A stretch of 64,000 nucleotides of DNA from Adineta vaga (Eukaryota > Animalia > Rotifera), in contig CP075492.1 in the NCBI GenBank assembly GCA_021613535.1, positions 4,588,001-4,652,000 of the forward strand, read 5' to 3'. This document shows positions 19,908-26,463 of this stretch, one piece after another. The notes under the pieces were generated by a model. That model saw nothing but the letters and a program-made list of their open reading frames with translations. It was not told the DNA's origin and did no database searches. Every line of letters starts with the position of its first letter. Position 1 is the stretch's first letter. The position numbers and the translations under genes were made by a program.

Positions 19908-20792
19908 GAATAAATGAAGTTGTATACTTTTTCTTTGTGTATTTATAATCGACATTTAAATGGCATCTATATATCTTTGATATTTAAGATTGATAGGTGA
20001 TCACATGTTAGTTAACCTCATATGAAACTTTCGTTTTAAAGATCAATAGTGCGATACACTAAATAATAGACAAAGAAATATACATAGATTCGTAATCTCA
20101 AAAGATTCGTTTTTTCGATTAGTGGCATTTATATGTAATAAAAACATGATCATCATATTCGTCTTGAGGATGTGGATGATAAAACTATGTTGATATGAGT
20201 TTCAACAATAATCGATAAAATAGATGATATAGACAAAAAGAATACAACTGCATTGAACTAGCAGTATACTGTTTAAAAGAGCTTTTATTAAATAGAAAAT
20301 TTTGTTAATAGATTTTCAGATTAGAAGAAATATTCTATTTAAATTGATCTATGTACACGACAGGTTAGATCAAAACAGTATAGTCGTAAACGACTGTATT
20401 CAGAGAAATATGGCCGATTTTGCCGTTTATCGCCGTATTATTTGTTTCCATGATTGTGTACTGAATTCGTACTATTCGTCTTGAAAGTACTTTATCAGTT
20501 GAAGATTTACTTTTTATAAACATAAAAAATAAATAATATAAACACATTAAGGAAATTTAGATATTTTAGAATAATCATAACAACATCTTTCAATCATTTC
20601 TTACAAAAGTATGATTTCATATGTTTTAATCTTACATAAACTTGCAATAGCTCGTCCATTACATTAGATTATTGATGAATTGAGTCAGCATACTCCTTTT
20701 CCTCGTTTACTATGCTTTCATAATCATTGTGTAATACAACTCTATATAATAATATTTACGTTCTCAAGACAAAAATCATCATCATCATAAAA

Positions 20793-23700
20793 ATGATGTC
20801 GTCATATTTGATTACTATACCTAAAACTGATCTTCAATTGAAACAAATATCAGGTAAATCGATATTTTGATGTACATTGAAATGTTTTTCATTTGATTGA
20901 TGCTTCTGAAGATTTTTCTACTGGAATATTTATTGATAATTCTGGTTCAACATGTTCGCAATTAGTCTCCATTGGTAAAAATGTTCTGCAAGCTGCATTG
21001 AGTATTTGTGAAACAGTTCGTTTCGATCATATTATTCTTTGGAATACATCAGCAGAAATATGCACCGATATTACAGCAGCAAAACCTACCGGCGGAACAT
21101 CACCAAAGGCAATATTTCAAAATGAATCAACGAAACAAGCATTTGAAAAATCTGATGTTATTGTTTTTGTTACCGACGGAGAAATTGATGATAATAGCGT
21201 CACGCAGGTATGAAACACGTTTTCTTTCCTCAAAGCTCGACGTAATTTTCATTTTAAGAAAAAAACTCATCGCTGAAAATTTCTAGAACAACTATCTTAT
21301 TCGTGTTTATATTTTTCATTGAAAATCTTTTTTTTTCAGTTTGCAACATGTACACAAGTTAATCTGGACAAAGCATTAGTTATTTGTGTCATTATTCACA
21401 AAAAATTACCAACACCAACTCAAATCAATGTTTCTGTTGTTGCACCATTAATGATGGCTTCGAATGTTTTATGTCTTTACTATGATGGTGAAGTATTTTA
21501 TATTCTTTCATCAAAAGGATATATTAATAATTTTTATAAGTCAACAGATGATTTAACAAATTATGAAAATTTGAATACTTTGAATATTAAAGAATTATTT
21601 GATAATATACAAATTTATGAACATCAAAAACTTCCCGTTGGTTGTATTCCAATTCGTGATGATGAAAAAGAAATAATTGCGATCAATTATAATCAATTAT
21701 TAAGTATAAATGATGTAGAATCAGTTTCAAAACTAACTGAAGATGATTGGAAAACAATCATTCAATATGGCAAAATAGGAAATAAATTACATGAATTACG
21801 AACATTTGTTTCACAAATGAAATATCAATCGATACAGTTCGATACAGAAAAATGTCGATCAAAATTTGATTTTAAATTTTCCAGACAACGTGATGAAATT
21901 ATTTCTCAGATTGTTACACTTAAATTAAATGAAAATGATCATTCAAATGAATTAGTTAATCTTCGTCGACAACTCTATGAAATATCTGATCAAGCGAAAA
22001 TTGAAGAAATCGAATATTTGAAATATATCAATGAAAATCTTCATCAAACTCGACATTATTGGAATACAATTCAAAATCTTATTCATGAACAAGAAATAGG
22101 TTCTTATTCAATTAATGATTTTACTTTTGCATCCAATCGTGCCAATCGAGCAAAAGTTTTAACAACTAATGATGAAGAATATTCCGATGTTATTACTATC
22201 CTAGATCATACTGATGTTCCATTATTTGAATGTGCAATTTGTATGGAACAAGGACCATTTGTTCTTTGGTTAAAATCGCCAACAAATCTTGATGATACAA
22301 CTAATGATTTTATCATTAATTTTCCTTTAGAAGGAAATGAAAATTTAGCTCATTGTATTGTTGCTAATCCCGTTTGTGGTTTATGTGCGAAATCTTATAT
22401 CAATGCATCGATGATGAATTATTCCAATCAATTGATAACTCTCTATCGAGAACCATGTACTGGTTTTATTCCATTAAATTGGACAACATCATCGAATCGA
22501 AAATATATAAATTATACATTATTTCAAGTTCTTACGGGAAATAAAATTCTTCATCATGTTCAAATGTTACTTTTAGCAATAATTGATGAATGTCAATTTC
22601 AATGGTTAGATTCGAAAATCAAAACATATATTATAAAACAAATGATCGAAAATATCTATACGACAGATTCATTTTCTGATGAAGGCACTCGAATGATATT
22701 TCTCAATGCATTAAAAGAAATCGTTAAACAAGAAGATAAATTTCTACGTCAACCAATTCAAGCTTTTTGTCGTATCTTAAATTTGAATCATATATATCAT
22801 CAATTGGATCAAGATACTATTCAAATACTTTTACGAAAACGTTTTACATTATTATGTATTGAAAATCAATGTTCAAAAACGAAATTTGGTCCCGAATATT
22901 TACTCAATATTAAACAAGAATTATATGATATGTTATTCGATACATTATGCGGCATACCACTTTATAATTCATTGAAAAAGATCGATATTGAAAATGAATA
23001 TTTACGAAATTTTCTTGGTAAATCTTATGAACGATTAATTCGTTCCGTTGATAAACTTACTGCAAATTTGACTATCGATCGTTCGACAATATTTCCAAGT
23101 GAAATCATTTCATTTGTTTTGTATCTTTTAACAACAGTACAAGTTCATGATCGACCAATGAAATTATATACAGATTTTGTCTTAAAACATCGATCATTTC
23201 GAGATAATATGCAAATATCATGGTCAAAATTAACAGAAGATGTGAATATTCAAGTTTTCGGTAACTATCATTCTGTATCGGAATTGATCATACCTGCTTA
23301 TGCAATTAATCTTGGTCGATTTTCTTGTCCAAGTAAATTATTCTTCAATCGTGAATCATTATGGAATACAGATGTTGAAAATAAACGAATTAATGTTACA
23401 ACATTAATGAATCAATTAAAAATCAATCTTGATTCTAAATTAAAGAAATCATATGGAAGTTCAACACCTAATCACACAAGTGCGCATTTTACTTTACATG
23501 CAATTGTTGCTGAAATTCTTGAAGAAATGCATCCAAATCAAGAGAAAATGACGGATGATATGATTATGAATTGTATGATTCGTATTGGTAAAACAGCTGG
23601 ACGAAAAGGAAATATTTATGCTGATATTGTTTTTCAAGTTGCTGTTATTACAATTGAAGATTATCTAAAATTTCGTCAAACAACGATAAATCGTATTCAA

Positions 23701-24751
23701 ATTGATCATGATCAAATTTCTCGTTCATATCAACATAAAGTTCTTAGTGAATTAATCGCAAATGGTATGGAATATGATGAATTAACTAATGAAGTTTTAT
23801 TTGATCCATCGAAATTAAAAGCACCAACTGTATTTGAAATAAAAACTATTGAAAAGAATTTCGATGAAATGAGAAAACGTATTCAAGAACTTTATATCAC
23901 AACGAGAAAACAAACGAGCACAAATCTCGATCAAACATGTTTAAATATTGAAATCAAAGATTTTATTGAATTTGGATATAAAATGAATCCAGATGATCTT
24001 CTACCTATATGGACACAGTAAGTCTTTCATTGAAACAAAATCATCTAATTTGTTTATTTATTCTGATTGTAGAGAACAAAATAATATTGTTTCATCGATT
24101 ATAACTGATCGTGATGAAATTGAGCAACCTATTAAATATGTTGCTGGTTTGGATATAAGTTTTGTGAAAACCAATGATAAAGCTGTTGCTTCAATGGTTA
24201 TTTTTGATTATTCCACATTGAATATTGTCGCAAAGATCAGTGTAAATTGTAATATGAAAATTCCATATATTGCAAACTATCTTGCTTTTCGTGAAGCACC
24301 TGTTTTTATGAAATTACTCGATATTCAAAAAGAACATTGCTCTCATTTAACACCACAAGTTATTCTCATGGATGGTAATGGTGTTTGGCATCCGCGTCGA
24401 GCTGGTATTGCTTCACATTTTGGTGTTTTAAGTAATATTCCATGTTTTGGTGTATCAAAAAATGTTCTCTATGCCGATGGTATGACACGAGAACGAATTG
24501 AAGAATTATTAACCAATCAAGCGCCAAATGAAGATCAATATTGTGAAGTTATTGGTGATAGTGGACAAGTTCTTGGTTTAGCTTATAATGTAACTGGATT
24601 TGTTAAGAATGCAGTTTATATCAGTGTTGGACATAAGATAACATTGACAACAGCTCGGGAGATATTCAGATCAGTATGCAAATATCGTAATTGTGAACCA
24701 ATACGACAAGCAGATTTACTCAGTCGAGAAATGGTGGCGAAATTGACATAA
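20793..24751 (+). CDS. vWA domain - zinc/RING-like - helical region - Endonuclease V fusion protein (exons 20793-20853, 20912-21207, 21340-24017, 24073-24751; 1237 aa)
   Basis: All three introns are GT-AG and phase-compatible; MIDAS motifs IDNSGST, GGTSP, VFVTDGEI; CAIC (22231)...CGLC (22375); EndoV motifs GLDISF, PYIANYLAFRE, MDGNGVWHPRRAGIASHFG, GVSK, VYISVGH, EPIRQADL. Confidence 0.85.
24004..24751 (+). other. ENDOV: Endonuclease V domain (C-terminal part of the fusion)
   Basis: Catalytic D (GLD), E (FRE), D (DGNG) and D (QAD) retained; the N-terminal helix W-x-x-E-Q spans the last splice junction (PIWTQ/EQNN). Confidence 0.9.
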
Positions 24752-25160
24752 AAAGAAGTTTTTCTTTCGATTAATAAAACACGAAAAATAATAAAAAGGT
24801 TTTGTAAACAACGACAGAGAGGAAGAGCGATCTATAGAAACTCATTATCAATTAAGTGATCATTTTTAAGAGAGTGTAATGAATAAAATAATCGATCATT
24901 GCAAGAACTTTTCATCTACAATACATTCATGCTCATCCTCAATTTCCTTTTTTTTGCCATAGTTTTACCACGAATATCGTGTTTGCATCGAAGACGTGTA
25001 TTCAAGCGTTACAAAAAATATCGAAAAATAAAAGGAAAAAAGGTATGCATATATAAAGGAAAAGAACACAATCGTTATAAGATATATGTTTTGGTTTGAA
25101 CAAGATACGTATTGAATAAATACTCTTTTAAATAGTAAACAAATCAATTAACGAATAGTT

Positions 25161-26463
25161 ATGGGTTTACGACGAGCAATTGTATCACCAATATATTACA
25201 TTTATCGACGTTTTACATCACCAAATCGAACTTCACAATATTGGGCAATTCTTATTCTAATAGCATTGATTTATATTACGATCTTTATCTATATCCATGA
25301 AAGAGTAACTTCATCAGAATTTGACTCATTTACAAATAAAGATAGTGTTGATAATCAAACAACTAGTTTACTAGAATATCAAAAACAAGAACATCCAAAA
25401 TCTGTATTTAACTCAAGTAATAAAACAAATTTACAGTAAGTATTTATTCGATGAAAATATATATTCAAAACAATTCTATATAGAAATCAATCATTTATAT
25501 TCAATACCTCTCAAGTACGTTTACGTTATTCATTTATTGATCTTGACGATCTTGATGTTGATATCAATATTCTTGATGAAGAATTTCAACCTACTACTAA
25601 CATAAGCATCAATCTTCCACCTCCTGGAAGTCATCAATTTTCACGTATATTAAATATTAAAGGTGATCTTTCAACGATTGTTTATAATCGAATACCACAA
25701 TGTTATGAATATACAATGAAAATTTTACTCGAACAACTCTACTTTACATTCATTTAAATATATTTCAAGTCAAATTTATACGCCATTTACATATAATCAA
25801 TCATCGTTAATTACAATTGCTCGTTCATTAATTCATTATAAATCCAATCGATTAATTTATGATCGACATATTTATTTTTTTAATTTTCAACATTTAAAAT
25901 TTCCATCTCATCCAGTATGGATCAATCTTGTTCGTGATCCCATCGCTCGTATTGCAGCTGAATTCAATGCAACACGTGAAATATGTCGAACAACAAATCG
26001 TTGTTTTGTATCGAAACAAACCATCAATGATACACTTAGAACATGTATTGCTAAATATCCACCTCGTGATTGTATTTCAACAAAAAATGGTATTTCAAAA
26101 ATGATTCCATTCTTTTGTGGATTGACACATACACACGAATGTGAACGAAATGCTAGTTTTGCATTACAACAAGCAAAACAAAATGTTGAATATTATTATA
26201 CAGTAATTGGAATCACTGAAGAATTTTATAAATTTCTCTATGTACTTGGTATGTATTTTGAAAATGAACAGAGAAAAAAAAGGAAATTTAAAATTAATTT
26301 GTTTTGTTATTTAGAAAAACTTTTTCCAGAATATTTTCAACTAGCTCGTCTTCTGTTTATGAATACTCGAAATCCTGATCATCTAATAGATGAAAGAGAC
26401 ACAAACTTCTCTTCACCCAATGATCAAATCATTCGTACTCTTCGGCCATTACTTAATCATTGA
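25161..26463 (+). pseudogene. Heparan/uronyl 2-O-sulfotransferase-like type II membrane protein with a frameshift at ~25740 and degenerate PAPS motifs
   Basis: N-terminal TM helix; IVYNRIP, YDRHIYFFNF, WINLVRDPIAR, MIPFFCG, ALQQAKQNVEYYYTVIGITEE are characteristic of the HS2ST/UST family; the reading frame changes at ...GAA CAA CTC T|ACT TTA CAT; may be an intact gene with a sequencing error. Confidence 0.7.

Follow-up and report, generated by a model that had tools for sequence, protein, structure and literature searches.

A bdelloid rotifer gene that joins Endonuclease V to a large N-terminal module shared with giant viruses

Endonuclease V (EndoV) is usually seen as a small enzyme that stands alone, and what it does in eukaryotes is a matter of debate. 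Here, we describe a gene of Adineta vaga, a bdelloid rotifer, in which EndoV forms the C-terminal part of a much larger protein. The gene lies in a stretch of 64,000 nucleotides (contig CP075492.1, positions 4,588,001 to 4,652,000 of the forward strand, assembly GCA_021613535.1), called the window below, and all positions without a contig name refer to it. We find that 20793-24751, on the + strand as are all its features below, is one expressed and conserved gene, in which an N-terminal module of about 970 residues (the N-module) is fused to a catalytically intact EndoV, and that this gene is related to genes of giant viruses. The N-module contains a von Willebrand factor type A (vWA) fold with a metal ion-dependent adhesion site (MIDAS), a coiled coil, a zinc motif and a long helical region.

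The gene model consists of four exons (20793..20853, 20912..21207, 21340..24017 and 24073..24751), which join in frame to 1237 codons and a stop codon at 24749-24751, with GT..AG splice sites. Exon 2 encodes the first half of the vWA domain, and exon 3, with 2678 nt, encodes the rest of it, the coiled coil, the four-cysteine (Cys4) site, the helical region and the EndoV leader. The introns are short: 58 nt for intron 1 (20854..20911, GT..AG), 132 nt for intron 2 (21208..21339) and 55 nt for intron 3 (24018..24072, GTAAGT...TGTAG), the last in phase 2 within a glutamine codon (CA|A). The model starts at the ATG at 20793, while the NCBI model begins at the second ATG, 20796. Apart from this first methionine the model is the NCBI hypothetical protein I4U23_012054 (P0001, 1236 aa), whose residue numbers are used here, and the 892-residue product of exon 3 is 100% identical to it. 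The frame, the protein match, the variants and the coordinates were obtained from the joined exons, the searches were run per exon, and full-length work was done on database proteins, such as P0001.

To follow the splicing, contigs from public runs were aligned to 20300-25300: the RNA runs X1 and X4 (study P1) and X8 (study P4), and the DNA run X6. All three joints are spliced in the RNA contigs of the two studies, the joint 20853|20912 with its 58 skipped nucleotides in X4 and X8, that of intron 2 in X1 and X4, and that of intron 3 in X1, X4 and X8. Four differing letters at the edge of intron 2 amount to two synonymous changes. The contigs that span 24017|24073 reach back to 22758, 23396 and 23452 on the upstream side and forward to 24815. 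Intron 3 is retained in none of the contigs listed for X1, X4 and X8; the DNA run has it. The genome carries a single copy of the N-terminal part, therefore the spliced form derives from RNA. The protein gives independent support for the splice, since the first EndoV helix (W-x2-E-Q) straddles intron 3, which sits between W-T-Q and E-Q. The expressed variant differs from the window by 17 listed coding differences, 12 of them synonymous and five non-synonymous. In the 3' untranslated region (24752..24815) there is an AATAAA at 24773, and RNA contigs end at 24782 and 24815.

An initial annotation, made from the letters of the window, had proposed that exon 3 and EndoV are fused in one frame by a 55-nt intron that rebuilds the first EndoV helix through the CA|A codon, and that two upstream exons add a vWA domain with an intact MIDAS, giving 1237 aa. 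The spliced contigs of the two studies, the in-frame exons and the orthologues described below agree with it on each of these points.

Two loose ends were seen among the contigs of X1/X4. In one, at 21311, the part before the loose end maps to C2:14107620, and the contig is probably a chimeric assembly. In the other, at 23088, the part before it finds no match in the haploid assembly.

Orthologues of full length (1227-1236 aa) that carry a PF04493 domain at the C-terminus are found in A. ricciae, A. steineri, Rotaria sordida, R. socialis, Rotaria sp. Silwood1 and Didymodactylos carnosus. The seven full-length bdelloid orthologues share 62-74% identity with P0001, so the fusion recurs in related species of Adineta, Rotaria and Didymodactylos; its absence there would, by the initial annotation, have spoken against the reading. 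Each motif that the initial annotation had named is kept unchanged in these proteins. Invariant in bdelloids are the MIDAS residues D28, S30, S32, T82 and D108, the cysteine pairs C416/C419 and C464/C467, and, in EndoV, D1038, P1075-Y1076, E1085, D1111, K1140 and H1198. One polypeptide under purifying selection thus combines an EndoV active site that is intact with a complete MIDAS and a Cys4 site. Several of the orthologues are labelled "Endonuclease V" in UniRef, in unreviewed entries.

Two shorter bdelloid proteins, P0027 from Rotaria sordida (379 aa) and P0030 from Rotaria sp. Silwood1 (368 aa), consist of fragments of the helical region joined to a complete EndoV. Such proteins could be paralogues that were truncated, duplicates in decay or products of wrong gene models.

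According to its sequence, the C-terminal part is a eukaryote-type EndoV with an intact predicted active site. The EndoV module covers residues 971-1236 (23896..24748, interrupted by intron 3) and consists of the leader and the PF04493 domain. Exon 4 matches PF04493 with 179 bits, where the cut-off is 23.4 (E 1.1e-52), over profile positions 6-197 of 198. Among solved structures, mouse and human ENDOV (6ozk and 4nsp) come closest, in an alignment that takes in the whole of the C-terminal 225 residues at E 1e-44, while the bacterial enzymes in PDB reach about 1e-20. Aligned with mouse ENDOV are D1038 (24152-24154), P1075-Y1076 (24263-24268), E1085 (24293-24295), D1111 (24371-24373), K1140 (24458-24460) and H1198 (24632-24634), which bears out the initial annotation, where the catalytic acids and the PY motif were described as intact. 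Like ENDOV, the rotifer protein has the D-E-D-H/K catalytic set, the PY...LAFRE wedge motif and the N-terminal W-x2-EQ helix. However, characterised EndoVs have about 220-280 residues, and the A. vaga fusion adds an N-terminal module of about 970 residues.

The N-module begins with the vWA domain. Residues 14-212 of P0001 (20835..21621, spanning introns 1 and 2) belong to the Rossmann-like vWA fold. The MIDAS is formed by D28-x-S30-x-S32 (20935-20949), T82 (21097-21099) and D108 (21175-21177), all encoded in exon 2, and the motif is present in nearly all of 27 divergent family members. With residues 1-330 of three orthologues there is no Pfam match to VWA, VWA_2, VWA_3 or Ssl1 at E up to 5. 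Pfam searches with the N-terminal exons and with joined sub-ranges of database proteins gave nothing above noise, and profile searches with both halves of the N-module found nothing among PDB sequences. Other proteins with a vWA domain differ from the fusion. TFIIH p44/Ssl1, in which the vWA domain is followed by zinc fingers, and proteasome Rpn10 have other lengths, the fusion has no Pfam match to Ssl1, C1_4 or VWA, and neither p44 nor Rpn10 has a counterpart of its coiled coil or of its 470-residue helical region. A chaperone of the Ro60 type, with TROVE and vWA domains, was rejected: there is no TROVE match in Pfam, no Ro60 chain among the fold matches of either model, and the domain order is reversed.

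After the vWA domain, residues 244-371 (21715..22098) form long helices or a coiled coil in the secondary structure of the AlphaFold 2 (AF2) model, with a predicted local distance difference test (pLDDT) score of about 80-89. This part is followed by the zinc motif, C416-x2-C419...C464-x2-C467 (22231..22386), in a region that AF2 models poorly (residues 372-520, pLDDT about 30). Across the family the motif is C-x2-C/H...C-x2-C, where the second ligand is often histidine. Only C416, C419 (as Cys or His), C464 and C467 are conserved family-wide, and H408, C457 and C491 mainly in bdelloids. The initial annotation took this region to be RING/U-box-like and suggested ubiquitin ligation. The paired cysteines stand, but the RING/U-box identity finds no support: Pfam gives no RING/U-box match at E up to 5, residues 300-620 giving only a noise-level RPT match (E 3), the motif reads as a single Cys2-Cys2 site rather than a cross-brace, and the region is not confidently modelled. 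As the RING/U-box reading is unsupported, ubiquitin ligation is unsupported too, and the domain partners described below (Tpt1, 2H, Nudix-Tpt1) hint at RNA processing or repair and not at signalling by ubiquitin. The remainder of the N-module, residues 500-970 (22483..23895), is a helical region with a mixed alpha/beta end in the AF2 model. The C-terminal half of residues 500-985 is modelled confidently, with pLDDT 85-94 for residues 770-975 approximately. No fold match for the helical region was found in PDB, VIA-wide or Atlas.

The N-module is a family of its own, which Pfam does not cover and which is common to giant viruses (Mimiviridae-like metagenome-assembled genomes and Hyperionvirus), fungi and bdelloids. 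When the N-module profile was scored against 1.84 billion representatives, it matched 453 clusters at E<=1e-3 and 92 at E<=1e-30. The best family matches reach 9.6e-225 and 765 bits and span profile positions from about 8 to 990. Among the best 150 representatives, 18 have an EndoV, 13 of these being full-length (1179-1346 aa), and about 74 are full-length members without it. The EndoV-less members nearest to the fused ones stop cleanly ahead of the EndoV leader. On the viral side there are at least 13 fused clusters at 50% identity. Stand-alone members from fungi were identified by name, among them those of Drechslerella, Aplosporella, Toensbergia, Jimgerdemannia, Elsinoe and Gonapodya. With the distant alignment A5, a word-based homologue search returned only the members of that alignment, and a 957-aa neighbour on L013, considered as a further member, was rejected as not being in the family.

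The viral fusions are collinear with the rotifer protein. Viral "Endonuclease V" proteins of about 1,190-1,212 aa (Hyperionvirus A0A3G5A9R9, GVMAG-S-1041352-47 and IMGVR_UViG_3300045961_000134) show the same order of vWA/MIDAS, C-x2-C/H...C-x2-C, helical region, EndoV leader and EndoV. The viral genes are intron-less and 30-40% identical to the rotifer gene, which has three introns and a derived stand-alone paralogue. In IMG/VR, the loci match query residues from 1-930 to 1-947, and complete fusions are present on the contigs L016 (1212 aa) and L017 (1210 aa). Three family-bearing contigs were found there, two of them labelled GVMAG. The family-bearing contigs are intron-less, dense and ORFan-rich, with genes for ankyrin repeats, tRNA synthetase, eRF1 and the like. 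In BFVD, the helical region matches "Endonuclease V [Hyperionvirus sp.]" (1190 aa) with E 1e-14 and TMq 0.56, and a Satyrvirus protein is returned as well. The fusion is therefore not unique to A. vaga; it is an uncharacterised EndoV variant within a scaffold family of giant viruses and fungi. The initial annotation knew of no described protein with this architecture. Literature searches for a vWA-EndoV fusion gave only matches to "endonuclease VIII" or "endovascular" and none on the architecture, so that no characterised protein of this kind emerged, but unreviewed entries named "Endonuclease V" do exist for bdelloids and Hyperionvirus.

In some relatives another enzyme is attached to the N-module. 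P0270 (L010:306-3818, GCA_029935915.1) has a C-terminal Tpt1/KptA domain (PF01885, 2e-38) in the position of EndoV, and at L015:5452-8829 (GVMAG-S-3300005286-75) the N-module carries a 2H phosphoesterase at its N-terminus (PF13563, 2e-26). On L011:6879-11573, a giant-virus-like contig of 1.5 Mb, a Nudix-Tpt1/KptA gene (346 aa) lies 80 bp upstream of P0131, a vWA-Zn-helical-EndoV gene on the same strand. A Nudix-KptA fusion of the same kind has been reported in Bodo saltans virus (Iyer et al. 2022, PMC9503650). That paper describes RNA-repair sets of 2H, KptA/Tpt1 and Nudix, and a text search of it found neither EndoV nor the N-module. Unlike in these sets, no RNA ligase was seen linked to the N-module here.

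On two further giant-virus-like contigs (L006:7229-13616 and L008:7328-13488) the same order of three genes is kept: a protein of 858-872 aa, an N-module-only protein of 935-980 aa, and a protein of about 205 aa without a Pfam match. The first protein of the trio has a weak DEAD-helicase match in one of the two.

There is good support for a gene transfer between giant viruses and the stem lineage of bdelloids. In the EndoV tree, all sampled bdelloid EndoVs, including both A. vaga genes, form one clade with a Shimodaira-Hasegawa-like approximate likelihood ratio test (SH-aLRT) value of 100, and this clade lies inside another (SH-aLRT 99) that holds every viral-type fused EndoV. The EndoVs of Helobdella (an annelid), Corallochytrium (a protist) and fungi fall outside the latter, so that the A. 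vaga lineage, unlike the sampled annelid, fungal and protist enzymes, groups with the fused EndoVs of giant viruses. In the 50-row tree of the N-module, the bdelloids are sister (SH-aLRT 90) to a clade of P0131 and the GVMAG protein of L015, and the IMG/VR fusions are in another clade. Among named animal sequences, the fused gene is found in bdelloids only. Its base composition in the rotifer is host-like. We favour the direction from virus to rotifer, because the viral diversity is greater, the modular variants are on the viral side and the gene is intron-poor in an intron-dense neighbourhood. Most likely, the bdelloid stem lineage would have received the fused gene from a giant virus, after which the gene gained three short introns. 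The foreign origin that the initial annotation had suspected is in line with these trees and with the fused genes of giant viruses.

The A. vaga genome contains two PF04493 loci and one N-module, and no further EndoV is detectable. The second EndoV is the stand-alone gene at C1:13927833-13928447 (I4U23_004569, P0032), which has a GPCR-like open reading frame (ORF) upstream. The surrounding region, L003:6650-7484 (G000:C1:13927650-13928484), retains a relic of the fusion leader upstream of the ATG, in which a TAA takes the place of the fusion's Glu995. In other bdelloids, the stand-alone EndoVs have 262-267 aa and align without gaps to fusion residues 971-1236, Met1 being opposite Ile971. Because of the TAA in the leader relic, the one of A. 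vaga has 237 aa and lacks about 30 residues at its N-terminus in comparison. The paralogue also has an intron at the position of fusion intron 3. The stand-alone copies (SH-aLRT 97) branch from within the fused ones in the EndoV tree, where the Didymodactylos fusion is placed outside (SH-aLRT 95). By the shared leader, the same intron position and the nesting, the stand-alone gene is a partial DNA duplicate of the 3' end of the fusion. A stand-alone EndoV, whose presence the initial annotation had left to be checked, does therefore exist in the genome, as a derivative of the fusion.

EndoV cleaves the second phosphodiester bond 3' of inosine, and the characterised eukaryotic enzymes use RNA. 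The enzyme in the fusion would cut 3' of inosine, probably in RNA, with tRNA as a possible substrate. RNA is proposed because the closest characterised relatives are the mammalian ENDOV enzymes and the other partners of the module are RNA-end enzymes. The N-module is probably a targeting or regulatory scaffold, which would recruit or gate the nuclease. A partner protein may bind to its MIDAS through an acidic residue, and the substrate or the complex may be held by the zinc and helical parts. As Tpt1/KptA or 2H replaces EndoV in relatives, the module is best read as a carrier for interchangeable enzymes acting on RNA lesions or RNA ends. A wider proposal is that giant viruses, fungi and bdelloids share an unrecognised enzyme carrier with EndoV, Tpt1/KptA and 2H heads, and that in bdelloids it replaced EndoV, with the stand-alone form created anew. 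This we put forward tentatively, with less than even confidence. The gene may in this way have replaced an ancestral housekeeping enzyme.

Several observations weigh against parts of this interpretation, and they are best considered together with the explanations that compete with it. No fold is assigned to about 600 residues of the N-module, and Logan contigs cannot prove a single full-length mRNA. The depth of the RNA contigs is about twofold higher across 23396-24815 than across 20977-23480 (13.5 against about 6 in X1, 11.6 against about 6.5 in X4), which may reflect a 3' bias or a further transcript, of EndoV only, that starts internally. The raised depth would suit a model of two adjacent or overlapping genes, where the N-module stops at the TAA at 24019-24021 and EndoV starts at the ATG at 23983 (MNPDD...) with its own intron; this in-frame ATG would give an EndoV of normal size, and the stand-alone paralogue of A. 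vaga begins at the equivalent methionine. However, not only is the intron retained in no listed contig of the RNA runs, but the spliced contigs also reach up to 1.26 kb upstream of the joint, and the open frame across the junction is conserved in all bdelloid genera and in the intron-less viral genes. We regard two separate genes as extremely improbable. The origin is less settled. The reduced N-module tree is a trichotomy in which viral monophyly is not rejected, the 50-row tree places the bdelloids within the viral diversity at SH-aLRT 90 only, and in the EndoV tree a viral fused clade excludes the bdelloids, with weak support. The fusion could instead have arisen in a eukaryote, either a rotifer or a lineage of a wider distribution since lost, and have been captured by giant viruses. 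The EndoV of the fused clade lies within the eukaryotic EndoVs, the trees do not reject a viral clade without bdelloids, and the N-module occurs in fungi too. Against this stand the far more diverse viral side, with its fused clusters and its N-module-only, 2H and Tpt1 variants, the single tight clade that bdelloids form among named animals, and the few introns of the gene in an intron-dense neighbourhood. A reverse or vertical origin is thus unlikely, and a transfer from virus to rotifer is still preferred.

For the function, the preference for RNA is drawn solely from co-occurring domains. EndoV is also able to act on DNA, and giant viruses hold many DNA-repair genes. A serious rival, although an improbable one, is therefore a DNA-repair role, in which the fusion would nick DNA beside deoxyinosine that arises by deamination of adenine, for instance upon desiccation or irradiation, with the vWA and zinc parts as a scaffold like Ku or TFIIH p44. 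However, mammalian ENDOV, the closest solved relatives, are described as inosine-specific ribonucleases, p44 matches no better than other vWA domains, and the alternative effectors Tpt1/KptA and 2H are best known as RNA-end enzymes (PMC9503650). It is very unlikely that the protein combines a sensor, a RING/U-box E3 ligase and a nuclease and serves as an effector in antiviral defence or in the surveillance of hyper-editing. In favour of it, vWA domains are found in conflict systems, viruses share the family, and a feature search in Atlas gives RING and U-box/vWA clusters, with scores of 0.82-0.87 that are under the trust threshold. On the other side, besides the lack of a RING/U-box match in Pfam, only four zinc ligands are conserved in the family, the zinc region has no confident model, and nothing links the protein to an E2 or to ubiquitin. 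A scaffolded nuclease acting on RNA remains the reading that we prefer.

In this lineage, EndoV is permanently tied to a large MIDAS scaffold, which is conserved across a whole animal class and common to giant viruses. The alternative heads Tpt1 and 2H give a concrete and testable hint that the module targets RNA. The 453 clusters define a sizeable protein family outside the coverage of Pfam, and the gene would be a clean example of a transfer between giant virus and animal, followed by intron gain and partial duplication.

In the neighbourhood of the gene (window 12000-34000), the six longest ORFs have no Pfam match. Exon 3 stands out from these neighbours, as the initial annotation had remarked of its single 2.7-kb exon, because apart from the gene there is no other ORF of more than 135 aa within these 22 kb. 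The region is AT-rich, the G+C content of the window being 29%.

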